A DNA stretch of 64,000 bases, taken from the NCBI GenBank assembly GCA_964247055.1, contig OZ176053.1:2790001-2854000 (forward strand). The letters are read 5' to 3'. A program made the translations under genes and the position numbers. The DNA comes from Paragordius varius (lineage: Eukaryota > Animalia > Nematomorpha). This document shows, in pieces, positions 32,901-61,964 of this stretch. Position 1 is the first letter of the stretch, and every line of letters starts with the position of its first letter. The notes below the pieces were generated by a model. That model was not told the origin of the DNA and made no database searches. It worked only from the letters and a program-made list of their open reading frames with translations.

Positions 32901-35900
32901 AAAAGATTGCCATCCTAGCGTAGTTCACACCTTTTTCAAAGCCTTTTACCAATGTGACACGCACAGGGTTAGATTTGAACCATCCATCATTAAGTATTTG
33001 GCTAAAGCTCATAACATTTGGTATCCGGTCCTACTTCAATTGGAACACATGAATGATAATTACAATGCTTTAATTGATGTTCAGCAACATCAACAACAAC
33101 CTGCTTGGGATGATGTTGTAAAAAATCGAAGCCAAACACTCGTTAAAAGACTCAATGAGCTGGAGGAAAGCCAGCGTACAGACAATGAGCTCGTGATCGA
33201 TATAGATTCTTTGCGCCCACTGTCACACAAACAAGAAATCCATGATACACTTTCAAGCTTGTACACAATGTTAGGGGAAACGGATATGGTTTATTCACTT
33301 TGGTCCCACTCCAGCAAACATCCTAAAACGGCTAGAGCCCTTATGCACGAATTATGGTACAATCATTTAGATGCCCTGGAACAATGGGAAGATTTGATGA
33401 CGGAAACGGTGGAAAAATGGGAACAAAACACAAACAACCAGCAGACTGAAGCGGTTGACGACAATAATATACATATCATGGATAATGATTCGGAATTTAA
33501 GCTTTGGGAAACGCATTGGATTCAATGTATGAAAGAACTTGATAAATGGGAAACGTTGGAATGTTTTGCATCTAGTCATGATCATGACATGACTGCCAAT
33601 GTCCACACTGAAAATGTAAATGAAACCTCAATTACATCAGGAGGAAGTGATACTCAATATCGTCCCCAACTCGTGCTAGATTGTGCCTGGAAATGGGCCG
33701 ATTGGAATGCCATGAAGGAAGCCCTAACGGCCGTACAAAAAAGTTGTCCGCGTGAATTGGCTTGGAAAGTTAATTTGTGTGCCGGTTATTTAGCACTTTC
33801 ACAGTCCGATGAACACCACCTCGCTATGATGGATAGGATAGTTGAAATAACTACAGGCTTAGCTGTGCGAGAATGGAAACGTTTACCCCACAATGTTATA
33901 TCCGTAGGGGCCCACGGGACTCTGTTAAAGGCAACCCAAAAGGTGGTCGAACTCCAAGAAGCTACACAACTACGTATCTCATTGCTGTACAATCAACAAC
34001 AATTACAACAAAGCCATAATATGTTGTTAACTGGTTACGGTAGTAACAATATGAGCCCACCCTATAAAAGTAAGTTGATACGTTTTTTTATATTTATCGG
34101 ATATTAACTGATTTCCCTTTAATGGAATAAACAATACCGTTTTATCCACAAATTTTAAATCTTATTACGAGGGATGTCCAACTGTCCAACACTGGCTTCG
34201 TGTAACAATGAATCCAACGAAATCACATTCAAAAAATACATGGCAATAATTATATTTATTTAGATTTCCTAATGTAACACCAAAAAAATTACGATCGTTT
34301 CATCAATTTTGGCTAGTTTGTTGTTAAAATTAAACACTAGAAACCAAATTTTTTTAAAATTATGATTTCAATTTGGTAATTTTTAAATTTTTCGTCTGCC
34401 GTACAAAATATCTCGGAGAGGGCTGCGTGTTGGACATCCCCCTGTTTTAAACCAAAAACTTTATATGTAATTTCCAAACGGTATGTCAAAAATATTAAAA
34501 TTTTCCTATCTCTTAAATTAGATACTACGGGGTTAAATTCAGAACTTGGATCTTCTTCATCTGAAACGCTGGCCGCTCATCAAAGTTTAATGTCACAAGG
34601 GAGTGGTGGTGGGAGCAGTAACACAAGCCTACCAGTCAATTTTATGGAGCTTAGGTCCATAGTTAAAACCTGGAAAAATCGGGTCCCATTGATTTCCGAT
34701 GACTTTTCTTACTGGCACGATATATTTTCTTGGAGACAACAACAATTCAATTACATGATAACTATGTTTGATACTTCGACGGCTGCTGTTAACGGAAGCA
34801 GTAATAATAATAATTTGAATAATAATTTGAATATGATGGGTGATAGTAGTGTGTTAGGACCAGGTGCAAGTACAAACAATAATCCTTTGCTTATTTCTAC
34901 GCATTCCTTGGCCCAAAGTTATCTTCATTTGGCCACGGTGTGCAGGAAACAACGTAAACCCCGTATTGCTCTGGAAGTGTTGAATAAATTGATCATACCA
35001 AGCGGCAATAACAACATAAATAATAATGTAATCGTTACTGATTGTTTTAGGAAAATCAAACAAACCCTCAAGTGTTACCTTGAACTCTATTACATGGATT
35101 ATTTACAGCAAAAAACGTATGGAGATATGGAGGACCATCCACTAGATCAATTACAATTGTTTGATGCCACCATCCATAAAATGTTGACCAAAGAAATGTT
35201 GTCTGAAATTTTTGCGCTCAAGGGTTACGCCTACACCCTACAAAACAGTAGTTATGATGAAGCGGAACGAGCTTTTTCAGCAGCCATACAATTCTCGGAT
35301 ACTCACTTTAAATCTTGGGGGATTTGGGGTGAGGCGTTGGCCGCACACTTTTGGCAACGCTTAGATTTCAACAATTATCAGCAGAATAAAGAGGTTCGTG
35401 ACCGAATAGCACAGGCCGCCAATCAAGAGCCTACGACGACGACGACAAATCCTGCTAACACCTTATCTTCACATAACAATAATGATACTGATAATGATGA
35501 GGATGAAGATGTGCTTTCATGTCACCCAAGGTTACCCTATAACTTTAACATTGCTAAATCGGCCATAAATGCTCTGTTACAAGCCTGTAGATATTCCAAC
35601 GAAACGAAAGTTAATCGTTATTTGGCACACATTTTATCACTCCTCAAGTACGATGATGATAAATGCACACTGGCTGAAACGGTCGATAAATACTTGACAA
35701 TTATTCCATCGTATCATTGGTTACCCTGGATCCCACAACTTTTGATGAGTCTTGAACGTAAGGAAGACAGTTCGTCCGGGAAATATATTATGAATATAAT
35801 TACACATTTTGGACGCACCTATCCACAAGCCATATTTTTCCCAGTTCGAACTTCATTCCTATCCCTTAAGATGGAGTATAAAGAAAACAATTTTAGTGCA

Positions 35901-38408
35901 TCCATATCTTCTGGTGGTGACGCAGCAATAGCCTCTACAATTAATACCGAAATTGCTAAATCCTCATTTACTATTGCAACAACAACATCATCATCACTCC
36001 TCGACAATAAAAGTAGTATCCCTCAATCATTACAGGGTGATAAATTATCATCAGATAATGTTCTAATCTCGTCTACGTATTCCTTTTCCTCCGAATCATT
36101 GAATCGAATCATAGATGCAGCACCTAATACACCATTTATGGTTTCTGCTGTAAGTCCTCCGACTATTTCAATAACCTCATCCGCATCTCTTCCAGAAGCT
36201 TCGGCACCAGATGGGGAATTCAAGGAGGATACAAGAGAAACCAACAATCTTTCAACTACTACCACTGCAACAGATTCATTTGTATCATGTTCTGCTACAA
36301 GTACCAATGAAAGTTTTGCCTTACATACTCAAGCTCCTCCAACTATTGCGGAAAAATCTATTTTGTCTTCCTCTAACATTTCCACCAATGTCACAAATTC
36401 ACCCATATATTGGTGTCGAAGGATTTTACATGTGTTGCGAGAGTTACATCCAACCACCCTATATACACTGGAGGGATTGGTCGATCAACTTATATGGTTT
36501 AGGGAAACTTGGTTTGAGGAACTCCTACAATATTTGAAGCAATTACTTGTTAAAAGTTACATTGTATTGTTTCATATACTAAAGTTGTATGGTACTAATT
36601 ACTGTCGTATCAAAGGTGATGATACACACATTGTCACACAAGACAACATTGTTATGATTCCGTATGGTGAATGTACCGTTGATTCCGACTTGAATCCTAT
36701 CCTTTCTTACATAACTAGCATAATGACAAAACTATTGACGACCTTTGAATCTGGCATTGAAAATTTAGCCAGTCTCCCTAATAAAATGTCAAATTCTTCG
36801 ACGGAAACCTCAATAAAACGGGCGCAGGCAACACTCAAAGATCCGGAATACATGACACTAAAATCCAAATTTTCGCAAGATTTTGGATTTGTAACAAGTA
36901 AACCCGGGCTTGAATTAGCCAACGTTAATCTGCTAACTGTACGTCTTAAGGAATGGATATCATTACTTGAGCGTAAGATTAAACGTGACCTCCCCAACAC
37001 ATATTACATGGATGATAAATGTTCACTCCTTAATAATTGGCTTCTTAACGATGTGGAAATCGAGTTACCAGGCCAAATCAAGTATTCCAAACCATCACAG
37101 TACAGTGTTAAAATATGTAAGTTTTTACCAACCATAACCGTAGATGATAAATCCTCATCTCAATCGTGCCGTAAAATAAGTGTACGTGGTAGTGATGGTC
37201 GTTTATACAGTTATTTAGTGCTAAATGATAATTTGTTTCTTTCCCCGTATCATTCGTATGCCATAAAGCCTTGGGAAAAACGCAATTCATCGCATTTGAG
37301 GACCGCCACAAGTCAATTGTTTCGACACGTGAATGGATTGTTTTCCAAAATTCCAGAGTGTGCCAAACGACAAATGGCTTTCAAACTTTCACGCATGGTA
37401 ACTATATCACCCCATATGACATTGGTGGAAACGGATGATACCCTGATATCTATCATGGATATTTACGATAATTATTATCAGGGCTTGATTGAAAAAATGG
37501 GTAGTGTTTCAGATCCTACTTGCACCGCTAACAAAAATCAAAAAATGAATGTTTGTGTTGAGAATGCGCTTTCTCAATATTATAACCGTTTTTTTGATAA
37601 AATGGAAAGCTTGCATGAAAGGGAATCGCTTCAAGCACTTCTCAATGAGTCATACCATGAAGTTTACAAGGATCATTTCGCGTCTTCCGACAAATTATTA
37701 CTGACATGGGCTCAAAAAACTTACATAAATTCTGGTGATTTTTGGCAATTCCGTAAATCTTTTGCCATAGATTACGCTTCTCTTTCTGGATTTTCTTCTG
37801 TATTTGCTCTTTTCCCTATTGGTCTGGAGCAAAATATATTGTGCTTGAATAAGTTAGCTTGTGTGGGTGTACCCTTTTCATCCCAAATTGATATTGCCCA
37901 ATTATTGGGTAAAGCTATGAATGAAAATGCTCAACCGGACACATTTAATCTGATTCGATTAACGCCAAACTTAAGTCAATTTTTAAGCGGTACCATCCGT
38001 GGCCCATATTTCCAAGCAATGAAAGCCATGGTGCGAGCTCTTTTTGACCGAAAACACAAACTTGATGTATTTCTCCGAGCTTTTTTCAACGATTTACCCT
38101 ACTTGAACTTGAATGTGGCAGCCATTAAAGATGAAACCGAATCCAATGTACAAGATATGGCCATGGATCCAGAAATTAATGGTGTTGCACAATCCTTGGA
38201 TGATTTGGTACAAAGACAGTCTGACATAAATCTCATAACGTTTACGGAAACTATGAATCTTATCCTTAAAGCCATTACCCATTCACTTAGACACATGTCA
38301 CCCTATCATGATGATATTAGAGCTGATGCCTTATATAAAATTGTGGAAGAATCTAGACACATCACAAACATTACCCAAATAAATCCACTCTTCTATCCAT
38401 GGATCTAA
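20915..38408 (+). CDS. TRRAP: Transformation/transcription domain-associated protein (TRRAP/Tra1/Nipped-A), PIKK-family pseudokinase, 5002 aa predicted
   Basis: Exons 20915-22011, 22652-22859, 23578-30261, 30937-34069, 34522-38408 (15009 nt; all introns GT-AG with matching phases). Hallmark motifs: SLKVLSELPIIVV, ELCLTVPVRLSSLLP, LVSQGLRTLELCVDNL, PPKKHLLRHQ, KYHGHLLLAHII, YWTKKIMIEEGH, QNWEPMGNYYW, WIPQLL, WFRETWFEELL, RLTPNLSQFL, FATC end INPLFYPWI*. Confidence 0.95.
30737..30912. mobile_element. MITE family A, in TRRAP intron 3
   Basis: TIRs of about 45 bp (CAGTATGAGTAAGTATACATTGCTAGAAAGTTATT...), flanked by TA. Confidence 0.9.
34168..34444. mobile_element. Buster-type hAT MITE, in TRRAP intron 4
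   Basis: GAGGGATGTCCAAC ... GTTGGACATCCCCCTG inverted ends; a related end lies at 50083. Confidence 0.65.
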
Positions 38409-38636: not shown

Positions 38637-41600
38637 TCACCATTTTCCGCCTTTCTTTTTTTTCTTTTTAATGGGTACATTCTTAGAAACGTTTCCAACC
38701 AGAGGTGCTTTGTTACTTTCAAGACCTTGTTTACCATCATTTTGGTTTAAAGCGCTAAAATATGATTAACATATATATAATTAATATTTACATCATTTAA
38801 TTTTAAAATCATATCTATGCACAAATTTTTAAATACTTTTCTTCTTCTTGACTTGGAACTGCACCCTGTGTACCTTTGTCTAAAAAGCAGAAAAAATAGA
38901 TTAAAAAAAGACATTAAACTAAAAGAAAAATATTTATTTGAAGAAAATCATATTTTATTTATTTTTTAATGATCGACCACTCTTAGTATTATAAATCAAG
39001 ATTGCTACATAGTAAAAAAGTATTGTTTTTATATAAAATATTTGTATTTAACGTTTTCTTTTTATTAATTTATACCAGAAATGATGGTAATAATATATAA
39101 AACAGGTTGATATTTCCCTGATTCAAGTTCTACAATATATTTTCATAAAACGATAACGTAAAAAATAGTTTAGGCTTCAAAGATTTTTTTGCAAAAATAT
39201 ATTTTAATTCCAGTGTTTTGGCCATAAAATAGTTTAATTACACTGCTCAACAAGGTTTTGCACCACCCCATTATTTTGCATTTTCTGATACCTATTGGCA
39301 TGGAAAGGCCAAAACAAAAAAGAAATTTGAGGCCACCAATAAGATTTTTCCAAAATTTAATTTTTAAATTTGTATTTAATTCAAAAATAACAATCATTCC
39401 TCGTGTACATATGTTTAAATATTCAAACAAGCAAGTCGATACAAGTAATATTCCATGCATGGATAACAAATTCTAGGCATTAAATAAGATACTAAACAAG
39501 CTAAGAGCCAAAGTATTAAAAATCTAAAAGGGGCTTATGTATAGTGTGATAGATCCGGGCGGCTGCACAAGCTCTGCATATCCCCCAAGCGATCCTATAA
39601 TTATGCCAGATATGGCAAAGATAACAATAAGTAATCGTAAAGTCCGATAAGAGAGACTTGCAAGCAAAACCGTGGCAAATTGACATGTCAAACCAATTTA
39701 CAGAATAAAGTTAGATAAATTCTACAATTAAATTGAATATAAATTAGGTAAATACAAATGGTCCAACCCCATAATAGTAAATTCTACTAAAAGTGGCTAC
39801 ACAACATCCATCTGAAATTCAAAATACAAAACAACCATTAATTTTAAAAAAATAAGGTATATCCACTAGGTATAAATAAAGGATTTTTTATAAGAACCAA
39901 CTCAAGAGAAAAAGTTTAATAAGTACTCGAAAGAACGAAATCTAACAAAAAAAATATAGCCTATCTGAAAGCCGAAGGTTTAAACCATAGAATGCCTTAT
40001 TTAGTATTTTTTTAAAAATTTTTTATATGTAAAAATTCACTTGAAAAAAAAAGACTAAATTTTGACGTTTAAGTCCGTACTATTTTTTTCTCTCTGATAT
40101 TTAAATGACATATTTATATTCAAAAGATAGAGTTTAAAATGCTTTATTAAATGATATTAAGTTTATAATATAATAACATTTCATTATAAAGTTATATTTA
40201 ATTTTCTCTCGATTTTCTCTTGTTTTTGAAAAATTGAAAAACCTATAAAATAAAATTCTGATTGGCGGGATCAAAATTTTTTTAAAATTCGGTTTTAAAA
40301 CACTGAAATTAGTCATAATTTAAAAAGTTTGAGTGGTGGTGCTTATAAATGTCCAAATTTGTCGACTAGTGTTATATTTTTTTTAGTTGCATGTAATAAT
40401 TGTGTATTTTTAAGAAAATATTTAAATTATACGGACTAACAAAATATAATCTATATATTTACAAAAATGGAAAATGCTGGCTTTGTGATTTTCCGGTAAA
40501 CCGGTAGACGCATTCAAATCCAAATGTCGAAAAAATATAATTATTAATGAATGCCCCGACAATAGCTTCGCCCTTTTTTGAATTAGGCCCCCAGTTAGGG
40601 CCCACCCCGTGTAAAAAACGGGTTTTTTTGAAAACAGAAGTCCACAAAAATCGTGTCTTTGAGACAATTTTCCGGAGAACGTGTTGGACCATTCAATTTC
40701 AAATATGATTTTTGTTTAGTTATTTTGGATTGCGCCGAACATAGTCGTCACGCTTTTTTAATTTAAGCCCTCTTTTTACCCGCTCTCCCCGTAAAAGCCA
40801 TTTTTTCAAAAAAAGTCCACAAGTAAACAATATTTTAGTATGAATGCCCCGTTTTGAAATTCCTATGAGATCATAGCTATTAAATAATGTTTCGAAATAA
40901 TCCACATATGTGGATCATTTTATTGTCCCTTTTTTGAAAAAGCTCCCCCCTCCCCCAGAAGTCCGAAGACTTCCTTGGGCTGCATAGCAGCTAAAGATTT
41001 ACGCTAGTAACAAATATTTTTTTCCAAATACAACCATATTTTGTTCCTTAATTTTTCCTATATAAACTTAATTAAAATTGTAAAATAATGGATTGTGTTA
41101 CCAATGTACATCTCTATTCTTTACTTTCCACTTTCAAACAATGAGTTTTATTTAATATATCAAGTTTTAAAAGTATGATTATCTTTTAGAAAAAAATATT
41201 TGTCTTTATATTTTTACGTTTGTCCTTATAAATTCAATTTTTACTGTAATTAATTTCGATTTGTGAATTAATAGATACAAAAAAATAAAAAACTAAAATA
41301 ATATTTGATAATTTTTAAATTAAATGCATACTGATATCATCCTTGCCTTTGTTTCCCTTCTTTTTCCCTTTGCCTCTTTTTATTGCGGTGTTGATGTTGG
41401 CTAATTATGATTTTGTCAAAAAATTAAATTTATACTTAAAATGTTAATGTACAGTAAAAATCTAACATATAATGATAAAATTTAAAAATTAAAAGGACAA
41501 TATTATTAAAGAACAGCGGACAGCCATACCTTTTTTTCTATATAACCGCAATCCTTACAATTGTAAACTGTAAACCATAGTTTATTAATAAAATAAGTTA

Positions 41601-44600
41601 GAATGCGTATGAAATAAAAGAAGAATTTTAATTTTCGACTTTTACTGAAAAGTCTTTATCAAAAAAAACTCAATTTTGCTGTAAAACCATAGGTTGCCTT
41701 AACAAAAACAGGGTTTAATAAGTATGATGATGGCTGCTGTTTTTTTTGTTAAAAAATAATTTGTCCTATAGAGAATATTTAGTTTTTGTCATTTTTTACT
41801 GCATATTCACAAAGTCAAACAACAATAAACTAACTATTATTGCTGGTGCGTAAATGTCGGGGTAACCAGCGCTCAGGATCAATTCCTCTCTCCATGGATG
41901 AACCTGCTGCTTCATAAGTATAAGGTTGATTGGTTTCGAACATTTCGCCTTTTGCCATTTTTTTAGCAGTTATATGGGCTAAGCGTCGCCTTTTATTCCG
42001 TGCATTTCTTTGGACCCTATAATGCTGACTGTGATGCGTACCTTTAGTGTTGGCTGCTTTAACAACATTAACCAAAACATCGGTTTGACCGGTCGAAACG
42101 GTTTCTTGAGCCGGCGGTTTTCTAGTAAGGGGAAAATAAATTTTTTGATTACATCTATATATGTTTATAAAAGGATGTTTTTGAATAGATTTATGAATTA
42201 AAAGAATAATTTTCCTTTTTTAATACCGACCGATGCAAAATATAAACCATTATATGAATATTTGATAAAGGGCAAAATGACAAATTTCTTGAAATTTTGT
42301 AATGTCATTAACAGCCAAAACCTCATTAAATCATTCTTAAATTTTATATATAGCAAAAAATATTACCTTTCAGTTTTCTTTTTAGGAACATAAGACCTAA
42401 ACACTTTTTCCTTATAACTATCTATGATATGACTCGCTTCAGTTTCCCCAATTTCTACAACATTCTTTGATGACTTTTGTTCAGCGCCCTTTTCAGTAAG
42501 GAAGGAAAGGTATCTAATATAATGGGAAGTACTCATTTAGCAGAAAAAATCTAATATTTTTAACATACTTTGTACTGTAAAATTTAAAAAATATAATAGG
42601 TTATTAGAAAAACTAAGGTACCTAAATATGTAATATAAAATTTTTTATTATTTTTAATTTATGTCTTTATAATTTTAGATTTTATTTAAAAATTATGGTG
42701 GGACTATATTTAAAATACTTTTCACTCCGTTCATCATTTGACATTTTACAAAGTTTATAGAGGATAAGCGAAAAATCTCTCCTTGTATTCTGATCCATTT
42801 CACTAAAGAGAAATGATATAAACTAATTGGTATTTATCTTTAATATTTCTAAATACAGTTGTCATGAACTGATAATGAGTTTTTAATATAGAGGTTAACC
42901 AATTACAGTATGAGTAAGTATATATTGCTAGAAGTTATTAATTATTGCCAAAAAGCATATGCAGCAAAGAGAATTATGATTGGCTAATACTAGTAAAGAG
43001 TGAAAATAACAACTATAAGCCAATAATAATGACTTGTGTTATATATGTTATTTAACAATAATTAATAACTTTCTAGCAGAGTATACTTATTCATACTGTA
43101 CTTCATTATCATATATTGTTTGATCTACAATAAGTATTAAATATAAACGTTTTAAAGTTAAAAGTAACTTCCCAGTAATTTATGTGATTTAAGCTTTCAT
43201 AATAACTCAAAAACAATATAAAACATTTTACAAATTATTTTCAGAATAATATTAAAATATATTGAATATTATTGTGGATAAAACAGAAAATCCATGTAAA
43301 TTTGATCTCTTAAATTTCAATATTTCCCCGCATACGGTGTCATAAAAAAATTTACAGTAAAAAAATAAAAATGTGTAAACACAGTAAATCCCAAAATATA
43401 TGGCTAAAAATTAAAATAACCTTGTAAGAATTTCAATGCTATCTATGATATTTTTCATAAACAAATGAAAGGGTTGATCTGCGGAATTTGTATTTTTGTC
43501 ACCTAATTTTCGGACAATTGAATATGCATCCATAATCGTTGACCAGAGTTTAATCATGTAATATTTGTACAAAGCATTATTCTAGATGAAATATAAATTT
43601 TATATAGATTTTTATTTTTTTTCAATCAAAATTTGCAAATATGTGGAAAATAAATACTAAATCTTTATAAAATAAAACAAAAAGGTTAAATTAATAGTTT
43701 TCATATAATTATTCTATCTTTTATCTTCCTTTTATTTTAAAATTTGATTATACCCTATTCTGGAAGGCTGATAGAAAAGCTTTAAGATATATGTTGGCAA
43801 TCTCAATCGATTGTATTATTGCATCTCCGTTAATCTTTTTAGATTTTTTGACTAATAAATTTTCATTGATAGGTTGTGGAGTTTTACGAGGGCTGTCTTC
43901 TTTCATGAAATTTTTTGATTCTTTGCATAACCAAACCATATTTTCCACCTTTGTGCGATTTAATTTCAAAAATTATGATTTTATATTTAATTGTCAAAAA
44001 ATTACGTTTCGATATAATATTAATTTGGATTTGGTACTTTTAAAATAATTTATTGAGAAAGAGATTTATTGATAAAATCTACTTAAATATATCTTTGAGA
44101 TACATTATTTAAACATGAAAACTAAATACCATCTTTGGATTGGTATAGTAATTAGGTTGTGACTGCAAGTAATCCTTTGATTCATTAAAACGTTCTAAAA
44201 TAATTAATTTAAAAAAATATTTTAAAATAATTAATATAAAAAATATTATTTGGCATTCATTAAAAAAGTGGTCAATTGTATTCTTGTGTTAAAACATATT
44301 TATACTTGTTCATTTTAAAAAATATTTAGAATTTGTTATTAATCTTGGTCTATATTTCATAACAGTCATGACATATTTTAGCTAAAAAAGCATTTATGTC
44401 ATATTGCTTAAGATAAGCCACAAAGTAAGGAAGTGATTTGACAAGATATTATTAAAATAAAGTCACTAAACATGTCTTTCTTTTAACATTCCATTTAAAA
44501 CAGTAGATAAAAATTAATTTAGGCTCAATGAAAGATTATTTATTAAAGTAGAGGTCAAATTCCAAAAAATAGGTAAATATAATGTAATAATAATCTAACT

Positions 44601-47600
44601 CAATTTCACAAGAAGTTTTAGTTTTAGAGCAAACAGTTCGGGATTTAAAATATCTTTTTGTGTTCCTTCCATAATCTAAATTGTGTTATAAAAAATGAAA
44701 TAAAAAAATAATTCATTTCAATATATGGTGTGTAAGATATTTTTTTTAAGATATATAATTAACATTAAAAATTGATATTAACGGACAAAACATAAAATTA
44801 TAAAGATAAACATTATAAACGACAACCATACTTTTTAAATTTTCATTTTTTAAATATATTATTAAAAAAGCAAAATGCGAAGTAGATATATATATATATA
44901 TATATAACTTAAACAATCAATTTGATATTTTACCACCGTAATTATATAGCTTATAGAGGAAAAAATAAGGTATGAAATAGTATGGTTGTCTTTTGAAAAA
45001 AATATTTGTTTTTATATTTTTCCGTTTTGTCCGTATAATATCACTTTATAAGCATTTAAAATTGTGAAGGCAAAACAAACCATAGGAAAAATAATTTTTA
45101 GGGAAATACAGCCATTTTTATATTTATAAGTCTAATTTTGATATAAAAGATTGTTTTGGTGTTACAAAATAGGGCATAGAGATGTAAATTAATAACACAT
45201 CCTCATAATTTATTCACAACTATAAAAATTTGGTTTGTAAATAAAAAATGGTTACTTTTTTTAAAAATAATCGTTTTTGATTTTCTTGTCTATTAAAATC
45301 GAATTTTTAGTTTTAAAACTTATTTAAATACTGTTGTACTACTTTAATGATATCCAAAGCTTCCGTATATTTTTTAGATTGACATAATAGAGCAATGGTT
45401 AAAAGATTAATATCTAGTTCCTCTTGAACATTCAGTGGATTAAATTTGGTTTTATAGTTTTCGATGCCGTGCTTTGCAGAATCAATCTATAAATATTTAG
45501 AGATATTTCTTAATAATTGAATAAAGTATAAAAAACTATGATATATATTTTTTCATTACATAAATATTTATATACCATTTACAATTTAAATTCCCGCTTG
45601 AACAATTCAAATTCACCCTAATAATAAATTATGTGTATTTAGGCTAATATAACTAATCATTCATATAAAATATATTTTTACGGCATATTTTATTATTTTT
45701 TCAGCATTATATAAAAATTTTAAACAGAATTTTATTTAAAAATATTAATAAAAGTAATATTTAATATTAAAAATACACATAATTTATTTAAAGTGTGAAT
45801 TTGAACTCTAAATGGTATATTATATTTTTCATATTCGTTCGTATGAATATATACATTCTCTTCAACAAAATTAAATTCAAATTTACATCAAAAATAAACT
45901 TTTTAAAATATTAATACTTTTTTAAGAAAAAAGTTATTTGAAAATCTTTCAAAGTATTCATACCTGATTCAATTTAATGTTACATATAATGAGATTGGAA
46001 TAAAGATCTTTGTATTGATTAAGGGATAATTGCTTTTTAGCGTCATCTGACTTGACAAAATCCTCCAATCGTTTAATCCAATTTTTGAGCTCATTTTTAT
46101 TGTCACCCAAATTACCCTAAAAAGACAATGTAATAAGATAAATAATTAATAATTACAAAATAATTTTTTAATTTGAGTACAATAAAGAAAAATTTATAAT
46201 AATCATTTTGTTATAAAAATGTTTTTTATATTAAAGATTCAAAAAGTGTTCCCCCTAAAAATGGGTATAAATGAAAAGTCACTGTTTTTTTCATAACAAA
46301 ACAATTTTTAACCTAATAAGCTATAATTTATAAGAATATTACTTTATTGATCCATGCATTAAAGTGTAAAAGTATCTTATTCGCTGGTTCTATATGCTCA
46401 TTTCTATGTTAAAAAAAGGAAACAATAATTAACAAGAAAAAATGTCACGAGTGAAATAAATTATAATTTGTTCAAATATATAAAATTGTTTGACCCTTCA
46501 TAATTATTATTATTATTATTATTAAGATTCATTATTATATAAAAGTGTTTGAAAAAATGTTAATAAATAATGTAAAACACACTATTTTAATAAACATAAT
46601 TTATTTGAATATAAAGACTAATCTAAAAATAATATAACATGTTTAATTTAAAGCCTATAAAAAAAATTTTATGAAAAAAATTATTACTTTAAAAGCTGCT
46701 GATAAATTTCCATTGATTTTTCATTATCAACCTGTTTATCACTAATCTGCAATGCATAAGCCATCTGACCCCTGGAAAAAGAGTTATATTAATATATGCC
46801 ACAAAATCTTATGGTTACAATTAGAACACAACTATAACCCTAAAAATAAATCAATAACTTTTAAATTAGGTATAAAAACAGAGCTATAAAATTTCACTAA
46901 CACTTCATTAAAAACTGAATTTTCAAATTTTGATAAAAAACTACCTTAGTGCAAATCGTTCTTCAGCCCATGACTCATCATTACCAATTAATTCTAATGT
47001 GAAAGCAATATTTAAGTTATAAATCAATTTTTTTGAATAAAATAATTATAAAATCCATTACTTTCAGCAGTTTGTAAATGTTTAAGAGCACTGGTGACAT
47101 TTTTAGTGTTAATTTGCAAAAGTAGTGTTGCCAAATTAAATAGGGCATCATATGAATCAAAAGTTAATTTTTTAGTTTCAAACATCTAAATTCGTTAAAG
47201 GATTCTAAAATACCTGTAAATTATCTGGATTCTTTGTGTCGTAAAATAGACTTGCCATTAAATTACAGCATCTTTCATCTTTATAAAAATCCTAGCATAG
47301 CATGGATAATAAAATTAATAAACTTACAGAATGACTCATTATATCGAAATATAATTTGGTACAATGCCCATAATCTTCTAATTTATATAACTAATATTGT
47401 CATCTAAAAATACTAATTGTCCTTTCATATCTTGATGTTCGATATTAACATCCTTTAGAGCTTTTAACATTTCTAAGGCTTCCTTAACTTTATCCATTTT
47501 AAATTGACAATAAGCCTTTTCTAAACGATATGATCTAAAAATAAAATATATTACTAACTTGAAATTATTTTGATTAAGAGCAGTAAGCGCATCATTGTAA

Positions 47601-47770
47601 TTTCCATTCAAAATAAGACAATAAATTTTAATTAAAATCGCTTCATTAATCTCAGTATCATTGTCTAAAAGAGTATAATTAATTAGATAAATACTATTCA
47701 AGATTTTTAATGCTTTAACATAATCATTATTTTCCACGCAATCCTGTACAGATATTATTTCTGAAGCCAT
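38637..47770 (-). CDS. SRP72: Signal recognition particle subunit SRP72, 767 aa predicted, 21 exons
   Basis: Exons (minus strand): 47770-47695, 47664-47559, 47534-47414, 47390-47328, 47291-47214, 47185-47062, 46993-46945, 46771-46688, 46403-46343, 46116-45964, 45486-45343, 44675-44600, 44194-44130, 43948-43754, 43581-43421, 42802-42719, 42513-42367, 42121-41835, 41400-41332, 38879-38837, 38754-38637 (2304 nt, phases consistent). Motifs: LEKAYCQF, GQL|LYKLE, DERCCNLMA, GQMAYALQ, DPERWLP, KGTQG, C-terminal KKKKKKGGKW*. The middle exons (12-17) are less certain. Confidence 0.9.
40450..41007 (+). mobile_element. Non-autonomous Helitron, copy 2, in SRP72 intron 19
   Basis: A|TCTATATATTT start and CTAG|T end, terminal hairpins, colinear similarity to 17545-18141. 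A small internal fragment also occurs near 51660-51700. Confidence 0.8.
42906..43098. mobile_element. MITE family A, in an SRP72 intron
   Basis: TA|CAGTATGAGTAAGTATA ... TATACTTATTCATACTG|TA. Confidence 0.9.
45573..45817. mobile_element. Foldback-like family, short copy
   Basis: TACCATTTACA ... TAAATGGTA ends with one CTTGAACAATTCAAATTCACC unit. Confidence 0.75.
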
Positions 47771-47871
47771 GTGGAATGCGATATGGTTAACAGTCAAATA
47801 TGTTTACATTCATATTCAAATAAGTTATTTTTTTCAAAAGTAAATGATTTTTTAAATTTTTTATTGTCCAT
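47771..47871. promoter_or_regulatory. Putative bidirectional promoter and 5' UTRs shared by SRP72 and SLC2A13
   Basis: Only 101 bp separate the two divergent start codons (47770 minus, 47872 plus). Function is inferred from position only. Confidence 0.55.
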
Positions 47872-50800
47872 ATGAACCAAAATGATAATATTAATCAAAC
47901 GCAAGACCTTTCTAATGTAAGATCTTACAATGAGCAAGATTATTTGTTGGATAATGGGCGAAGAATTCCCAAAATCGTTTATTTCATTGCAATATTTTCG
48001 GCAATCGGTGGATTTCTATTTGGTTATGATACTGGTGTCATATCTGGGGCTATGTTATTACTTAAAGATCATTTTAATTTATCAACCATGTGGCAAGAAG
48101 CGATTGTTAGCGCAACCATTGCGTCTGCTATATTATTTGCGTTATTAGGTTTTAGATATTTTTTAAAGTATCTAAATTAACTTTTAAACTTATTATCACG
48201 CATAATTTTTTTATTTTAGGTGGTTATCTAGCCGATTTGATTGGGAGAAAATGGACGATTCTAGCAGCAAGTCTCATATTCACCCTCGGTTCCATAAGTC
48301 TGGCGACATCTTTAACCAAAGCCTCTTTGCTAACTGGTCGAACTATTCTTGGTTTTGGAATAGGTAAACAGTAATTTATTGCATAAAAAACTTTAAACAT
48401 ATTTTTTTGATGTAAATCAGGGGTGTCCAACACGAAAGGCTTCGCGGGCCGTATTTTAGGCACAAAAAATCCGGCGTATTTGAAATTATATGGGCATTCA
48501 TAATTATATATTTCATACATAAATCTGATGCAAAGATAAAATAACAATTTTTCTTTAGTTTTTTTTTACTTTTTGCCAGGATGGATTTTTTGAAAATTTT
48601 AGCAAAAATATCAATTTTTCCAAGATTTTATGGGTATATCGTTAAAAATTAAATTTCTGAATTGTTCGCGGGCCGAGTGTTTGACACTCCGGTTCAAAAT
48701 ATAAAATTTTAACTTTTAATTATTTATAAGGTTTGGCCTCAATGTCAATACCCATGTATATTGCTGAGATGTCTCCCCCTGAGCTCAGGGGTCGCCTTGT
48801 AACTTTTAACAATGTTTTTGTCACCGGTGGTCAATTTATAGCAAGCCTAATAGATGGCATATTTAGTTATGATCGTATAAACGGATGGAGGTATATTGTC
48901 GCATTAGTTTGATAATTTTGAATTAACCACACTTGTTTTTGATTTTTTCCATATTTCGAAAGTGTGTTTGATAAATATATTTATTTTAAATTTTTACGTA
49001 GCATTTCAATTTTCTTATGAGTGAGACAGATATAATTATATCATTACTTTTTTATGACATGTTGGTGTTTGACTTTATGTCTCTGCGTTATGTCACATAA
49101 TGCTATCTATATACTTACATCTTTGTAAGGTCAAACTTTTCATTGAATAAAACAAACATTTTGGAATTCAATTTTATTCTTCATTCTGCAAGTTTCTTTT
49201 AATAACATAACATAAAATAACATAATTTAATAATTTCTAAATAATCCCATTTTATGGTTAAAGGATGACCATGACTTTGAAAAAAGAGAGAGAGGGAGAT
49301 GCTATATATTGATGTAATTTAGTCAATATGTTTCCTTACAGTAGCGTATGGCATAAAACCATATTAGTCCATAAAAGAATAAAAAAATGTTTTTTTAAAA
49401 AAAAACAAGGGGATATTATGGATACGTGTATATACAACTAGGCTTGTTAATAAAAATTTTATTCTTTTATGGACTAATAATGTTTTAAGCCATACGCTAC
49501 TGTATAATATCTATTGAGTGTACAAGAGACGAAACGTCTCTCTACCAGATAAAAACTAATTATTATTCTATAAATAATATAATGAAGATTAATTTGTTTT
49601 ACGCCTTCCTATGTATGGTAGGTAAATTTTTCCTTCCGTATGCAAAAAAAGGAATTTACGTGTTTTAAAATATTTTTATACCCCCTTTCTGGTGACAACA
49701 TTTTTTGGTGACAAAAAAAGTCATAATAATTAATATCGATTTTAGTTGGTGTGGATGATATATCTTTATATTTAGCCCAATAATATGTTATTTTAAAATT
49801 AACCCCTATTTAGTCGAAATAAATTATAAACCAAACAGGAGAATGAAGGTGGCGTGTGTTCCAAAAGAAACCCTTGAACCTAATTATTTTAGCACTATAC
49901 TTTTTTGCCTAATATTTTTAATTAGCCTTGAAATATAAAAAATAAGTATAAGTAAATATTGGGTGTTTAATTAATTTGGTAAATAGTAGAATTAATAAAG
50001 ACAAGTAATTCATTGCATTTTTGTTTAAATTTTTTAGCGCGTATAAAAAAGCTACCGTACTATTAGGTCTTTTTTTCTAAGGCAGGGATGTCCTACATAC
50101 GTAGCTCTCCAAAATATTTTTGTAGCCCTCGATTTAAAATAATAAATATAATGAAATCTAAGTAAAATTAATTTTTTTACACAAATTTTTCTGATATTCT
50201 TCCCCCAATTTTGGCAATGAATTTGCAAATTTTGTTGACTAAATAGTAGTTTTTAAAAGTCTTATCTTAGAAAGTTAATAAAATATATATTAATTCCCAT
50301 ATATATTTTGCGAATACGCCCCGAATTTAAAAAAACATTTTATTGTTAGGCATTAAAACTTTAAACCAGGGTTCCCAATGAAAAGTAATTAGTGGTATTC
50401 TAAGATAACAATCCCTATATAAAAAGATTTAGGTTATAAAATATACATACAATAGCTTATGACAAACAATATTAAAATTTTTTAAAAAAAACAACCCTAG
50501 TTTATATAGACATATCCATAATATCCCTTAGTTTTTTTTAACACAAAAAACATTCTATTCTTTTATGGACTAATATTGTTTTGTGCCATACGCTACTGTA
50601 TATGTATATATTAGTTAGCTTGTAAATTAAAAATCTCTTTTTATAAAAAATCATGAAATATAAAATCGCTTATCTTTTCCAATATGTTTTTCAACGTTTA
50701 AAAATCAATATGGCTGCTACGCTTCCCTTTATTCACCTGGTATGGGTTTATCTAAGGAACGAAAACATCCCATGTATGCAATATTTATTAGAATTTATAT

Positions 50801-53800
50801 TGTGTAATTTTCTTACAATAAAATAAAAAGGACTCTATTTGCAAAATAAATAATTTATAAATCATATGGACGGATATAAAAAATCTTTATTATATACTGG
50901 ATTTTTGATATGATTTTAATTTTGATCATATTATCATGCCATCGACTTCTTTTTGATTCTTTTTAAAATTGTATTTAACAAATTTTTTATTTTAAGCACA
51001 TTGATATAAAAGATAAAATTGTTTTAATTAAAACCTAAAATTTTTTTTATTTTACCTAGCAAATTAATAATTTTGTGTATTGTGCCGGGTAGAAAACATT
51101 AATAATATTTTAATAAGATATTTATTTGTCTTGAATCATATGTAAAAAAAGATGTATATTATTAAATATATATATTTAGAGTCGCCAAAATAGATTTTTT
51201 TATGTTGAAAATATAAATATGGATAAATACCATTAACTTTTTGAACATTTTTCCAAACAACTTTTATTCACGACGTCGATGAATATAGGAAAAAGCTTTT
51301 TAGCTTTAATGCCACGCGTAATTGTTTCTAATGAAATATAATGATATTTTTAAGAGCAAGTTACTAACTTTGAAAATTAATACTAAAGTATTAATGGATA
51401 TAATGATTTTTTTATGTATCTGTAGTACTTAACTCTCTTGGAACAAACTAATCCTTTGTAAGATGTGAAGTAACAAAAAAGCTCTTATATAGGCAGTTTA
51501 TCGATAAAAAATTTATGAAATATGGTGGATTTTTTAGACAATTTTTTTGGCAAACATATAGGTTTATTTTAAAGGATATTGAAAGATATTTAATTTCAAA
51601 TGCGACGATTTTAATCGAGTTAATAACTAAATTAGCCCTTAATTTAGACTTTTTTTAAATAAAAGTCCACAAAAATCGTGTTTTTGAGACAATTGAAAAA
51701 GGTATATAGGCTAAATTTCAATATTTATTTTTTTTTCTTTTTCACAAAATATTTTGATTTTTTTGGTCCAAGTTATCAAATATAAAATCAGTAGTGGTTT
51801 TCTACCTAGTATAAAGTCACAAACTTTAATTATCCGCGAATAGAGCTCCACCCTCTGTAAAATTGTCTCAGCATATAACTATAACGTAGCTTTCTATTTA
51901 ATTTTCAGAAGTCGTGAGTCCACTTGTATTTAATAATTTGTTTTTCAATTAATTTCCGGTTAAATTCAAATAATCCAGTTTGTTTTATATCAACCGCTTG
52001 GCTTGGCGCAACTAGGGTTGTGATTTTGACCCCCTTTTTTGAAAAAGGGGGTCAGACCTAGGTCCGACCTAGGTCTGACCTAGGTCATACCATATGTTAT
52101 TCCCAATAATAAATAACTACACACATAAATATTTGATTAAATCACATAAAAAAGGTTTTTACATAAAGTATATATTTTTTTAAAATTATTTCACCAATAC
52201 TAATAATTTAAATTTCTAAAATTGACGATCTTTTCTGGAAACATACATAAAGACTTATAGAAAATTTCAAATCACAGAAAGCTAAGACTAAGAAAAAAAT
52301 ATGGATATATTGAAACCTATGCTCTAATTATTTAGATTGTGTAAAAACGAGTCCTTGTCCATGAACTTAACGTTAACTTAGGATGGTTCAAAAAAATTTT
52401 ATACTTGAAAATTTTTTATACGATTTATTAGATTTAATATATAATCGTGCTCACTACATTTAAAATTTCAGTAATCTTATTAAGTTTAATATATTCTTTA
52501 ATCAAATTATTTAAAATGTGACATTGGCATTTATGCCATATTATTTTAGGATTTTCTTTATTAATCAAATTTTGAGCAGCCTTCATGTTCGCTGGAATTA
52601 TCGGTCACAATGGCATTAATTTTTAAATTTCAAATATCTTTTATTGGCTCCATTACGTGATAGAAACATTCGGCAGTCTTATTATGATAAGATGTGTCAT
52701 AAAAAATGATTAAGATCCTTGGCCAATAAATAATATTAATTTGCTTCCTACGAATATTGGTAAAGGGATCGACGATTAATGAAATATTATTTTTAATTCC
52801 AATAACTTCTATTTTTATATCTTCATAACACGAATCTATTAATTAATTGATCTGTTTTCTATTTGGAATAGCATAATTAGGTTTAAACTATGAATGAAAC
52901 TCCGTAAATGTTTATTTTCAACTATGTTAAGAGTTGAGGATGTAAAAATAAATTTTGCTAAATGTTTCTGGCTAATTTCTCTTAATAACAGAAATTTTTA
53001 AGACTAATTAAGAAATTAAATAATTAGATTTGCTTTCGACCATCACCCTCTGTAATTTATTTCATGAACTTCTTTTAGATGTTTCTTCATTCGGTTTTTA
53101 TTTATATATATATATATAGTGTAGTTGCATTTCTTGCATGTAACTTGATTTTTTTGATCGAAAAATTTTCACAAGGCTGATTTCATTATAATTTAGGAAG
53201 TAAAGAAAAGATGTGTATCATATTATATTTAAAACAAAATAATACATATATAGATACTATAAGGTTTTGTTTTCCTAAAAATTGTAAAATTAAAAAAATA
53301 AAAAATTAAAAAAAATAAAAAAAATTGACCTAGGTCATTTTTTTTCGTGGTCATGACCCTAGGTCATTGACTAATTGGCACAACCCTAGGCGCAACCTTT
53401 CCTAAATAAGTCATCATAGAAAACTAATGTGCGTATCCTTAAAGCAACCTTATGAAGTAATATCAATCATGGTTTTGTAAGTACCCGTATAATGGCAAAT
53501 TACCATTTACAATTCAAATTCACCCTTGAATAATTCAAATTCACCCTTGAACAATTCAAATTTACCCTCGAACAATTCAAATTCACCCTTGAACAATTCA
53601 AATTCACCCTCGAACAATTCAAATTTACCCTTAAACAATTCAAATTTACCCTTGAACAATTCATAATATATATGTTTTTTAAGATTAAAAATTACCTGTT
53701 TTATATATATTTAAAAATAAAAGTTTTGTTTTATATAATAATAATACTGAAAAAGTAATTAACTATGCCATAAAAATATATTTCATATTAATAATAATGA

Positions 53801-56800
53801 GTTATATTAGTTCGAAAACACAATTTGTTTTTAGGGTAAATTTGAATTGTTCAAGGGGGAATTTGAATTGTAAATGGTATATTTTGGCTAACTTCTGGGT
53901 TAAGCCCCACATTTATTACGCTAAAATTTCATGTTATTTATATATGGCATATATCTTCTTGATACCCTTTATTCACACGTCATACCTTTCAAAGTAATTT
54001 TGTGTCGAGTGATGATTTTAAGATATAATTTCTAACGAAAAAACTGGTATATAAAATAGATCTATGAAATATTCCTTATTGTATAGATTGCAAGCAACTG
54101 CACTTCATATTTAAGAATGCTGCAATTGCAAAACAATTGACCACTTAAATACAATAAAGAATATTTTAATCCATTTATACATGTGCTGAAAGAGGTCTTC
54201 TAGTAATAGGCGTTTTTAAATAATCTATGAAAATTATTTTCAAGCAATTCCCAGAAAACGGTAAGGAGACCTATTCGAAATTCAATCAAAAAATATTTTC
54301 TTTCATTCCTTATGAATATAATAATTTCAATTACTCAATCTTTATAACTCTTGGAAAAAAACAAATTATTTCGACCAAATGACATCGGCGCGTGATGGCA
54401 CAATTAGGATATATTATGTAATGAATTACAGTAGCGTATGGCATAAGACAATATTAGTCCGTAAAAGAATATAAAAATGTTTTTTAAAAACAAAAAACAA
54501 GGGGATATTATGGATATGAGTATATACAACTAGGTTTGTTTTTTTAAAAAAAGCATTTTTTCATTCTTTTCTGGACTAATAATGTTTTATGCCATGCGCT
54601 ACTGTAATTTATTTTAATGTCACACTTACTAAATGTGTAACATAAAATTTTAATGTACTGAGGCTACAGTAGCCTATGGTAGGTACTATGTCCATAAACA
54701 TAAAAACAAAAGTAATGGTAAAATAAAATAAAAAATATATTGCCTAATTTAAACTGTTATTATCATGCGTTATTAAATGTAATAAAATAAAATAATTTTG
54801 AGTTAGAACTATAAAGATGAGATTGGATATTGGTTTAGAAAAAATATAATAGGTTGAATGTTGGAATTCGCTAAATTTGAAATTAATTTACCGTATACAC
54901 ACATTGTTGGATAATTGCTAATATAGTTGCTTATATTATAAAACTAAAGTTAATGTTTTAAGAGAGGAATAAAATTGTAATTTGATTGATCCCTTGTTTT
55001 TTACCCATACACTACTGTGTTGCTGATTGGACAAAGTGCATGCTGTAATGTTATTTCAATCAAAATAATTAAGTTTTAAAAATCTGCAAGTACATATATA
55101 TGTCAGTTGAAATCATTTTATATATCAATATATATATTTTAATCCATTTAAGGCGGTTTATTAATCCAAACTTTCAAATTATTACTTTTTTTACAATAAT
55201 TCAATTTTTTTCATTTCAATCGCACGTAATAACACACAATAAAACTTTTTGTTTCGATAATAATGTGGTATAGATACATGTTGGGGTTAGCAGCTATCCC
55301 AGCTTTCATACAATTCTTAGCCTTCATATTTATGCCCGAGAGTCCGAGATGGCTCATTAAACGCGGGAGGGATGGACAAGCCAAAAGTGTTTTAGCCCAA
55401 ATTAGTGGGAGTGTTGATCAGGCCCAATCCTCATTCCAACAAATCAAACTTTCAATTCAATCATCAGCTGATTTGGAACAACAAAGGGCAAATACCTCTC
55501 ACCACGATACAAACTCTAACCAACAAGGTATGGCAAACGAAAACTCAAATGTTTTAAGAGTTTTATATAATAATTTTTCAAGTTAAATGGATTGAGTTTT
55601 TAATTTTAGCTATATAACAACAAAATTTCTTACATATTGATATTGTTAATTATCGTTTATTTATCAGAAAGCCAAAAGTTTTTGATGTAATAATTCGTTT
55701 TTTTAATATTAGGATTTTACGGTGATACATCTTTTATAAATATAGTTGTTATTATATCATTTTTTGTTAAATTTAGCATCCATTATCGTTCAAATATTTC
55801 GCAATCCATCGACCAGGCGCGCACTTTACTTGGGCTGTTTTTTGCAAATCATTCAACAACTTTGTGGAATAAATACTGTTATGTAAAAAAAATTATTATT
55901 ATTCCCAATTTATTTTACATAAGATAGTAATATTGTTGATATGGACCTTATTTATGGGCAATTTCAGTATATATAATTAAACTGTTTTAATAACAAATTA
56001 TAAAACTTTATAAAACTAATAATATGACTGTTATATGTACTAACTATGAATGTCGCATCATTTCTTGGAAATTTTTATTTATTTACATGTCAATTTAAGC
56101 AATTGACAATTGTATATTGCTTTACTTTACCTAAAATTACCCTATTTTACACACTGAAAATTGTATACAGGTACTATTCGGCCACAATCATAGAGATGTC
56201 CGGTGTTCGAGACAAAAGTATGGCCATTTGGCTTTCAGCTGCCACAGCGTTCGTAAACTTTTTGTGCACATTCATCGGTTTATATTTGGTAGAGAGGGTG
56301 GGCCGTAGAACATTAACTCTAGCAAGTCTTGCAGGTTTTTATTTGAAATACTCACACGAAATGAAATAATTATTTTTGAAATGTATTCATTGTTGAATAA
56401 TGTTAAAATTACTGGAATTTGGATATACCCATGTATAAAATTTTATTTTTTATTAATATTGTAAAAGGCTTAAAAGTATAGATTTACAATGAAAAAAAAA
56501 TTAATGATACAATATTTTTTTATTTTTTTCAAGATAAGTTAAATTTACTTATTTATTTTTTGTTTTTTGATTTAAAACAATAAGGTATAACAAATCAATG
56601 TTTATAATATACCCCAAAATTTTAGTCTTTAGTGTTACTTTTTTGTTATAATTTTAATTTTTACTGTAAAACCTTTTGAAGATTAATAAAATATCATTTA
56701 TTATACGAAAGGGTAATTAATAAAAGATATGCCTTGGCTATTTCAAATTTTATTTTATTGGTTTTAACTTTTATAATTATTTTTCTCAATCTAGGTGTCA

Positions 56801-60175: not shown

Positions 60176-61417
60176 ATAAAGATTTTAATTATATTTCTGT
60201 TTATATCCAATACTATCATGTAACACTTGATATATTATTTAATTTTATATTAAAACAAATTCTATAGAGAGTGAGGCAATAAATATTTTAGGTAGTTTTT
60301 TTACTACATATACACATTCACGGTAAAAAATTAATATATTTATGCAGACAAAAGGTAAAAACTAAAAGACAAATATTAATTTTTTAATACATTAACTATA
60401 TAATTACAATTTATATTATATAATGTCCCGATTTACCTCTTTAATTTTTCGTAACCTAAAACGATTTAAATTCAAAAATCAAGAATGAAAAATATGGTTG
60501 TATTTTATTAAAAACATATATTTGTCTTTAGTTTTTACAATTTGTCTCCTTCATAATATAAATTTTATTGTGATTGCCATATATTTTTATGATTACTTTT
60601 AGTGTCGTGAAGTTATTCCGTATCTCTGTAGTCAATGAAGTGAATGTGCTTGAATCAAATTATTTTGTGATAACATTCTGTTGATATATCCTATGTACAT
60701 TTGTGCAAGCTATTAGTATTACTGTATGGCAATTGATATGTATTTTATTATGTTGCATGAATCATATTTTATGTGGTGACTCTATAATAAATTATTTGCA
60801 TTAATATTTGCGGGTTAAAAATTAAACTTTTTTGACAATACGAATTTGCTATTTAATTAAGACATAATTAAGGTACTATTTTTATCCGCTATTTTTATAT
60901 TCATTCTTTCTAAATATTGAAATAAGGGAATCAGGTTTGAAAGCAAAACCGTTTTTAGGGATCTAGTCATTTATGAAATCGTTATTGATCGAAAATTATT
61001 GGCTAAAATACGGCTTTGTTATTATTTCAAACATTAATTTTGATTTTTTCGACTTTATGAAACTGTGCGGCAAAAACGGGCATCTAAATGTTCATGAATC
61101 ATATATGAGATAGCTAAAAGCTTTAGGATAATGCCTATCAAAATGACAAATGTGGTAAAAATATTGGAAAAATACTTAAATTTTTCTGCTATTAAATCAA
61201 AAAATGGTATTTATACAAGAAATATTGTACAATGTAGAAAAAGGCATCAATTAAATTTTATTCGTTAAAATGTAGCATGAGGATAAATATAAACGCAAAT
61301 TATCGATAAAACTTTTTTATTTTTATATAAAGTCAAGACTTACAATAATTTAGGCTTAAAAATCCACTTTGGCGTCAATTCCAATAAAAACTTTTAAAAA
61401 AATGAAAAACTCATATA

Positions 61418-61678
61418 TATCATTTAAACTTCAAATTTACCCTAAAATAAATTATGTGTTTTTAGGATTTAAAATACCTATATTTTGTTTATATTTTTAA
61501 AAAAATAAAATTTTGTTTAAAATTAAATAATACTGAAAAAACATTAAACGCCATAAAGATATATTTAATTTTAATGATGAGCTATATTGGCCCGAAATTT
61601 CATAATTTATTTTTAGAGATTTGAATTATGTAAGGATGAAATTGAATTGTTCGAGGGCGAATTTGAATTTAAATGGTA
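61418..61678. mobile_element. Foldback-like family, decayed copy
   Basis: TATCATTTAAA ... TTTAAATGGTA ends; same internal sequence as the 59093 copy. Confidence 0.75.
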
Positions 61679-61964
61679 TGTGAGATTTTTTTTTGATCAT
61701 TTGGACCAAAACAAAATGATCGTATGGTTTTAACAATTTTATATATTGCAATATTTAGGCTTACAAATCGATGCAGAAAAATACATCTATGTTAATAAAT
61801 ATTTTGGTATCATTATGGATATTTATTAATAAAAACTGAGTAGATAGATCTTTTCTGCATTGAATAATGAAGTATTTATGTATATCCAATGTTTTATAAA
61901 AATTATACGTTACTTCTGCTTATGGCGAAAAACAAAAGATTTATTTTTATATTTTAAACGCGAT

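Follow-up and report, generated by a model that had tools for sequence, protein, structure and literature searches.

Introduction

Ciliates and the nucleomorph of Bigelowiella carry GT-AG introns of approximately 15–30 nucleotides (nt), which are removed by a conventional spliceosome and lie near the physical minimum. These systems are unicellular organisms or reduced genomes, and their introns are uniformly short. Human "ultra-short" introns of 43–65 nt are too short for a normal polypyrimidine tract and are spliced beside long introns of the same genome; SPF45/RBM17 is reported to act there in place of U2AF. In this study, we analyzed a 64,000-nt stretch of the genome of the hairworm Paragordius varius (Nematomorpha; GenBank assembly GCA_964247055.1, contig OZ176053.1, positions 2,790,001–2,854,000 of the forward strand), hereafter the window. 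A gene on its minus strand, identified from its sequence as SRP72 (the 72-kDa subunit of the signal recognition particle), contains six GT-AG segments of 23–36 nt, hereafter micro-introns, which are about half the length of the human ultra-short introns.

In animals, introns shorter than approximately 30 bp are generally considered absent (PMC13644364, September 2026, Mol Biol Evol). In a survey of 51 animal genomes, introns shorter than 30 nt were found only in myxobolid myxozoans and Dicyema japonicum; Nematomorpha was unmentioned (PMC13644364). A first-pass annotation of the window had named dicyemids as animals with tiny introns, which is correct for Dicyema, but the list needs the myxobolids as well (PMC13644364). 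In the myxobolids (Henneguya, Thelohanellus, and Myxobolus) and D. japonicum, the median intron is 22–27 nt and nearly all introns are tiny (PMC13644364). A literature search on hairworms and Nematomorpha with intron terms returned no title or abstract on the topic, and the nematomorph genome papers examined do not contain the word "intron". Micro-introns thus appear to be unpublished for the nematomorph lineage.

The SRP72 segments resemble the introns of myxobolids and Dicyema in several respects: both are canonical GT-AG introns of approximately 30 nt or less in parasitic animals, they occupy conserved positions between conserved exons, and their donor motif is weak past the GT. The difference lies in their company. 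Here, six micro-introns stand in one transcript together with introns of 68–2452 nt, in repeat-rich surroundings, and a median below approximately 30 nt, which characterizes the myxobolid and Dicyema lineages, is not found for SRP72 and its neighbor gene in this one window. The nematomorph case is set apart from the published ones by bimodal lengths within single transcripts. Our conclusion is that the six segments are very probably true spliceosomal introns (U2 type, GT-AG), reduced to 23–36 nt, in a functional SRP72 gene; we infer their excision.

Materials and methods

All coordinates are positions in the window. The spliced reading of SRP72 was aligned using MAFFT with the SRP72 protein of a vertebrate gene that contains introns (locus L002, GCA_050626445.1), and the seven N-terminal introns of the vertebrate gene were mapped on the alignment. 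Two acceptor positions in L002 were adjusted by eye; the phases were unaffected. This single vertebrate served as the outgroup for intron positions.

The SRP72 model was resolved exon by exon in the 5' half and at the 3' end; the interval of approximately 44600–42000 holds ordered candidate exons, placed roughly by eye against human SRP72. Logan contigs of four sequencing runs with three organism labels (X2, X5, X11, and X12) were placed on positions 45250–48400.

Six short GT-AG segments in SRP72

The first-pass annotation had assigned the gene to SRP72, and the assignment was borne out by the open stretch 47770–47414, which matched the human SRP72 structure chains 5m72, 5wrv, and 7nfx (E 3.8e-9 to 3.4e-8). 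The exon pieces were colinear with vertebrate SRP72 in the expected order (tblastn and MAFFT), at a protein identity of approximately 30%. The 119-aa first piece alone scored 28.5 bits against PF17004 (SRP_TPR_like), under the 35-bit cut-off.

Three of the segments had been described in the first-pass annotation, and their sequences, positions, and lengths were reproduced letter for letter. These are a 23-nt segment at 47391..47413 (GTATTT...TTAG), a 36-nt segment at 47292..47327 (GTAAGT...CTAG), and a 28-nt segment at 47186..47213 (GTATTT...TTAG), all on the minus strand and in phase 0. The three are obligate introns of the reading frame. Retention of the 23-nt segment shifts the frame, and the 36-nt segment contains an in-frame stop, as had been noted; this sole stop is its last codon, TAG, that is, the 3' splice site itself. 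The 28-nt segment, for which only an in-frame stop had been recorded, carries an in-frame TAG and also shifts the frame (28 mod 3 = 1). Excision of all three yields the continuous protein reading given by that annotation. The alignment is ungapped where the 23-nt segment is removed and has a gap of one residue where the 36-nt segment is removed, and the exon past the 36-nt intron carries the SRP72 match on (DFYKDERCCNLMA versus DDYEEERKTNLSA). With minus-strand dinucleotide frequencies of 0.040 for GT and 0.052 for AG, the chance that a fixed segment has both ends is approximately 0.002. Both ends are present in three consecutive obligate segments, which is above the chance expectation. A 36-nt alternative for the first intron, judged by eye, keeps the old frame and meets stops.

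Three further micro-introns were found on the minus strand of the gene. Intron 11 (45290..45319, 30 nt, phase 2, GTTTTA...ATAG) is obligate, with a stop after one codon if retained; after its excision, the frame runs into 45289–45256 and then into the exon at 44675–44600. Intron 1 (47665..47694, 30 nt, phase 1) and intron 2 (47535..47558, 24 nt, phase 2) are probable introns with GT-AG ends in the first open stretch. Because both are in frame and stop-free in the reference, they are not obligate by sequence alone, and of the six, the 24-nt segment has the weakest case. If retained, it would contribute 8 residues, most of which face a gap in human SRP72 in the exon 1 alignment. A 20-nt alternative for this segment, also judged by eye, shifts the frame. 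The bias reported for ciliates and nucleomorphs against stop-free introns of a multiple of three is not obvious here, with two such introns among the six.

SRP72 thus has six micro-introns, five of them being introns 1–5 and one intron 11, and lengths grow toward the 3' end. Fifteen introns were resolved in the gene, six of 23–36 nt and nine of 68–2452 nt, and GT-AG ends are present in all six micro-introns and all nine ordinary introns. All six micro-introns end in TAG. Their donors include one perfect GTAAGT, and three of the six are GTATTT, a sequence that pairs weakly with U1 past position 3.

Intron positions compared with a vertebrate SRP72

Positional conservation is the published argument for validating the tiny introns of myxozoans (PMC13644364). 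The vertebrate gene encodes the same protein with colinear domains, and two introns occupy identical places in both genes. The 23-nt intron has the position and phase (0) of vertebrate intron 3 (GQL/LYKL versus GQV/LYRL, the slash marking the intron), and the ordinary 68-nt intron has the codon and phase (1) of vertebrate intron 5 (TAE[K]L versus EAE[E]L). Three others share the phase of a vertebrate intron within one to three residues: the 30-nt segment in the first open stretch matches intron 1 (one residue off, beside an alignment gap), the 24-nt segment matches intron 2 (one residue off, beside a 4-residue gap), and the 284-nt intron matches intron 7 (two to three residues off). The 173-nt intron has no counterpart in the vertebrate L002, and vertebrate intron 6 is absent from this SRP72. 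At matching positions, the introns are 215–1962 nt long in the vertebrate versus 23–68 nt here. For 8 introns here, 7 in the vertebrate, and 759 positions, the probability of at least two exact coincidences is approximately 0.002, and that of at least four same-phase coincidences within one residue is approximately 4e-5.

These matches suggest that at least one of the three micro-introns first noted, the 23-nt intron, descends from an intron of the bilaterian ancestor, and the two in-frame introns of 30 and 24 nt are probably ancestral likewise. With canonical splice sites throughout, and with an ancestral position for one of the three and, nearly, for two further ones, the micro-introns fit the picture of ordinary introns reduced in length.

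Other sources of comparison were less productive. A locus of Orcinus orca (L001, GCA_937001465.1) was rejected as an outgroup, its SRP72-like model P0002 being an intronless retrocopy with residues 104–501 in one uninterrupted stretch. Exon 1 searched against 1.8 billion representative proteins gave four matches only, namely three fragments of vertebrate SRP72 and a TPR protein with no relation to it, a word-indexed search with exon 1 gave no match, and a search with vertebrate SRP72 gave vertebrate matches only. The synteny route through the first exon of the neighbor gene led to loci L003 and L005–L008 (36–43% G+C, from other organisms), which are without SRP72.

DNA reads and polymorphism

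The runs found contain 80–86% of the sampled words of the locus, and the ceiling for fully spliced RNA is approximately 45%, as estimated from exon lengths. Contigs pass colinearly across the micro-segments and ordinary introns as well as the intergenic spacer (X2, 46735–47231 and 47238–47421; X5, 46959–47427; X11, 47398–47670). Because of this colinearity and a word share above the spliced-RNA ceiling, X2, X5, X11, and X12 were taken as DNA-type runs. An X2 contig (record 22) crosses the 23-nt intron colinearly. The genomic sequence was upheld: contigs of X2, X5, and X11 cross one or more of the segments with point differences only and no length change in the rows listed. Since the segments keep their length in independent DNA contigs, assembly collapse is ruled out. 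No joints were seen at the micro-segments in the four DNA-type runs, a result that is uninformative on splicing.

Variable sites were compared between exons and segments using the sites listed. The 701 exon nt contain 15 of these, of which 8 are synonymous versus 18–27% expected (P 0.002–0.026). A single exon indel is listed; it involves 3 nt at 47230, in exon 5, which the 36- and 28-nt introns flank, and two runs carry it. Such a pattern agrees with a functional gene under purifying selection whose coding frame is the spliced one, and it speaks against a pseudogene. The 30-nt segment at 47665..47694 is hypervariable, with four variable sites in its 30 nt versus the 15 in the 701 nt of the exons (Fisher P 0.006), and in the X5 haplotype, variants in this segment create a TAA in the retained frame. 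The segment cannot be coding in that haplotype. None of the listed variants falls at the GT or AG of an intron; in the 28-nt intron, two variable sites are listed and neither is at its GT or AG.

In the X2 allele, two adjacent changes replace GA by AG at 47192–47193, inside the 28-nt intron and six bases before its 3' splice site. The new AG is a competing acceptor, and its use would shift the frame.

Alternative explanations

Several points weigh against the conclusion that all six segments are spliceosomal introns of a functional gene. The share of locus words found in RNA-labelled runs of the species is 0.00, and all runs with the locus are DNA-like. The polymorphism tests use a partial list of variants, 40 of the 84 variable sites. 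The 28-nt intron is in phase 0 like vertebrate intron 4, but the alignment places it four residues downstream of that intron, and nothing in the single vertebrate outgroup corresponds to the 36-nt intron. The middle of the SRP72 model (approximately 44600–42000) is only roughly placed, and our knowledge of SRP72 copies is limited to the 64-kb window. One rival reading is that the 30-nt segment, the 24-nt segment, or both are plain coding sequence and only the three obligate segments are introns, which would leave fewer micro-introns. In the reference, each has a length divisible by three and no stop, and in HMMER, part of the retained 30-nt reading aligns to human SRP72 (NSIYLIN versus NKILQIN). 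However, both have GT-AG ends, each lies one residue from a vertebrate intron of the same phase (intron 1 and intron 2, respectively), and the 30-nt segment has its four variable sites and the X5 haplotype with an in-frame TAA. Unlike for the 30-nt segment, polymorphism gives nothing against the coding reading of the 24-nt segment. We regard coding sequence in one or both places as unlikely, though it deserves more weight than the explanations that follow.

A decaying SRP72 pseudogene, in which the segments are chance intron-like frameshift insertions or stops, would account for a protein that is truncated if any of the three segments stays, for its strong divergence (approximately 30% identity to vertebrates), and for RNA not being seen. 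It accords poorly with GT-AG ends in all six short segments, with exon variants biased to synonymous changes and an exon indel of 3 nt, with C-terminal motifs and a stop codon intact 9 kb downstream, and with two intron positions that match vertebrate introns exactly; we consider it very unlikely. Still less probable is an assembly or sequencing artefact, whether collapsed longer introns or small indel errors: AT-rich, low-complexity sequence is error-prone, but contigs of four runs lie on the stretch, and those of X2, X5, and X11 cross one or more of the segments without length change in the listed rows. Removal at the DNA level in the soma, as a programmed elimination like that of internal eliminated sequences, or a recoding bypass in place of splicing, was considered only because RNA is missing, and direct support for it is absent. 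The GT...AG ends and the intron positions in common with the vertebrate point instead to spliceosomal introns, and the four DNA runs contain no contig without a segment and no joint at the sites; its probability is close to negligible. Excision as spliceosomal introns remains our preferred explanation of the six segments.

Mechanism and significance

Most likely, the ordinary spliceosome would remove the micro-introns, recognizing them across the intron (intron definition) at a length near the minimum. Approximately 23 nt could accommodate the 5' splice site, the 3' AG, and, approximately 9–13 nt before that AG, a branch-point A, as in other tiny-intron lineages; this geometry is one that we infer. 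URAY-type motifs were seen by eye at 9–22 nt from the 3' end, namely TGAC in the 23-nt intron, CTTTAAC in the 28-nt intron, and TCTAAT in a 30-nt intron. They are not taken as evidence, because such matches are expected by chance in sequence of 75% A+T. The clustering of introns 1–5 at the 5' end invites a cap-proximal explanation, which is speculation. The unusually flexible spliceosome or distinct micro-intron class put forward in the first-pass annotation is likewise conjectural.

A further-reaching proposal is that, in an ecdysozoan genome which is large and rich in repeats, micro-introns of 22–36 nt make up a 5'-proximal size class of their own, recognized in a cap-proximal or U2AF-independent manner. 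We advance it tentatively and hold it to be possible but doubtful. If it were true, part of the published "loss" of universal genes in Nematomorpha would be an annotation artefact, because gene finders and BUSCO-type searches cannot model micro-introns. In the Gordionus genome paper, metazoan BUSCO completeness is 71.6% (10.1101/2023.06.26.546503). Micro-introns break open reading frames for standard gene predictors; hence, gene counts and claims of "missing universal genes" in the phylum merit re-examination with a minimum intron length of 15–20 nt. If the micro-introns are genuine, hairworms, which are ecdysozoans, would represent a third lineage of animals that has independently come to possess such short introns. 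It would also provide a natural system for studying what sets the lower size of spliceosomal introns while the machinery for long introns is still in use.

Gene model and ordinary introns

The SRP72 gene occupies 38637..47770 on the minus strand, with the ATG at 47770 and the stop codon at 38639–38637. Because of the colinear matches, the ordered C-terminal motifs, and the intact tail and stop, the gene spans 47770–38637 and looks complete. From the ATG, 372 codons can be read without interruption, and the last four exons are likewise open as far as the stop codon. All features below are on the minus strand. Exons 1 and 2 lie at 47770–47695 and 47664–47559. Exon 3 (47414..47534) ends with ...MKGQL, exon 4 (47328..47390, 63 nt) encodes LYKLEDYGHCTKLYFDIMSHS, exon 5 (47214..47291, 78 nt) is the exon with the 3-nt in-frame deletion polymorphism at 47230, and exon 6 (47062..47185) has 124 nt.

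The ordinary introns begin with intron 6 (46994..47061, 68 nt, phase 1), followed by intron 7 (46772..46944, 173 nt, phase 2), which is spanned by an X2 DNA contig, intron 8 (46404..46687, 284 nt, phase 2), and intron 9 (46117..46342, 226 nt, phase 0). The last was taken instead of a 22-nt candidate at 46342–46321, which runs into stops. Intron 10 (45487..45963, 477 nt, phase 0) contains a palindromic repeat resembling a miniature inverted-repeat transposable element (MITE). Intron 12, a probable intron (44676..45255, 580 nt, phase 0), joins 45289–45256 to the exon at 44675–44600, in which PELFALKLKLLVKL resembles human PENAAEIKLTMAQLKI by eye only.

In the 3' half, the DPERWLP motif, the KGTQGA exon, and a Lys-rich tail ending in GGKW and the stop at 38637 follow in this order. 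The DPERWLP motif is at 41880–41860; PF08492 scored 18.2 bits there (E 0.0032), under the 25-bit cut-off, on an open reading frame piece that holds part of the domain only. Past the DPERWLP exon lies a 434-nt intron (41401..41834). A 2452-nt intron (38880..41331), the largest resolved in SRP72, joins the Lys/Gly-rich exon at 41400–41332 to the KGTQGA exon at 38879–38837. The last intron has 82 nt (38755..38836) and was taken instead of a 22-nt candidate at 38836–38815, which runs into stops.

Neighboring gene, repeats, and base composition

An SLC2A13/HMIT-like sugar transporter gene lies head-to-head with SRP72 on the plus strand, with its ATG at 47872. The 101 nt between the two start codons (47771–47871) are probably a common bidirectional promoter of SRP72 and the transporter. 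The first-pass annotation had placed the micro-introns alongside introns of up to 6.4 kb. Long introns do exist here, but the 6.4-kb one (48891..55273, 6383 nt, plus strand) belongs to the transporter gene and not to SRP72. Other transporter introns are 71 nt and, between exons 2 and 3, approximately 360 nt. The best named match of the first transporter exon is a Gordionus sp. (Nematomorpha) protein (full-length identity of 57%, E 7.6e-25); matches to molluscs and others rank below it.

The MITE-like repeat in SRP72 intron 10 is approximately 260 nt long (approximately 45570–45830) and matches its own reverse complement. Each of the four DNA runs shows a huge word depth for it, with a maximum of 2.4 million in X2. 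The window holds three further copies (53639–53882, 59085–59347, and 61399–61679), and the copies are 72–79% identical. Beside one of them, in the 6.4-kb transporter intron, a tandem array of short units (53493–53755; one frame reads NSNSPLNNS...) has stretches of approximately 40 nt in common with the end of the MITE-like repeat.

The G+C content is 20–39% in the window and approximately 24% around the SRP72 gene; that of Gordionus montsenyensis, 26.9%, is close to that of the window (10.1101/2023.06.26.546503). Positions 24000–38000 stand out with 36–39% G+C versus 20–30% elsewhere and with long minus-strand open frames, and this block may be a large transposable element or a foreign insert.

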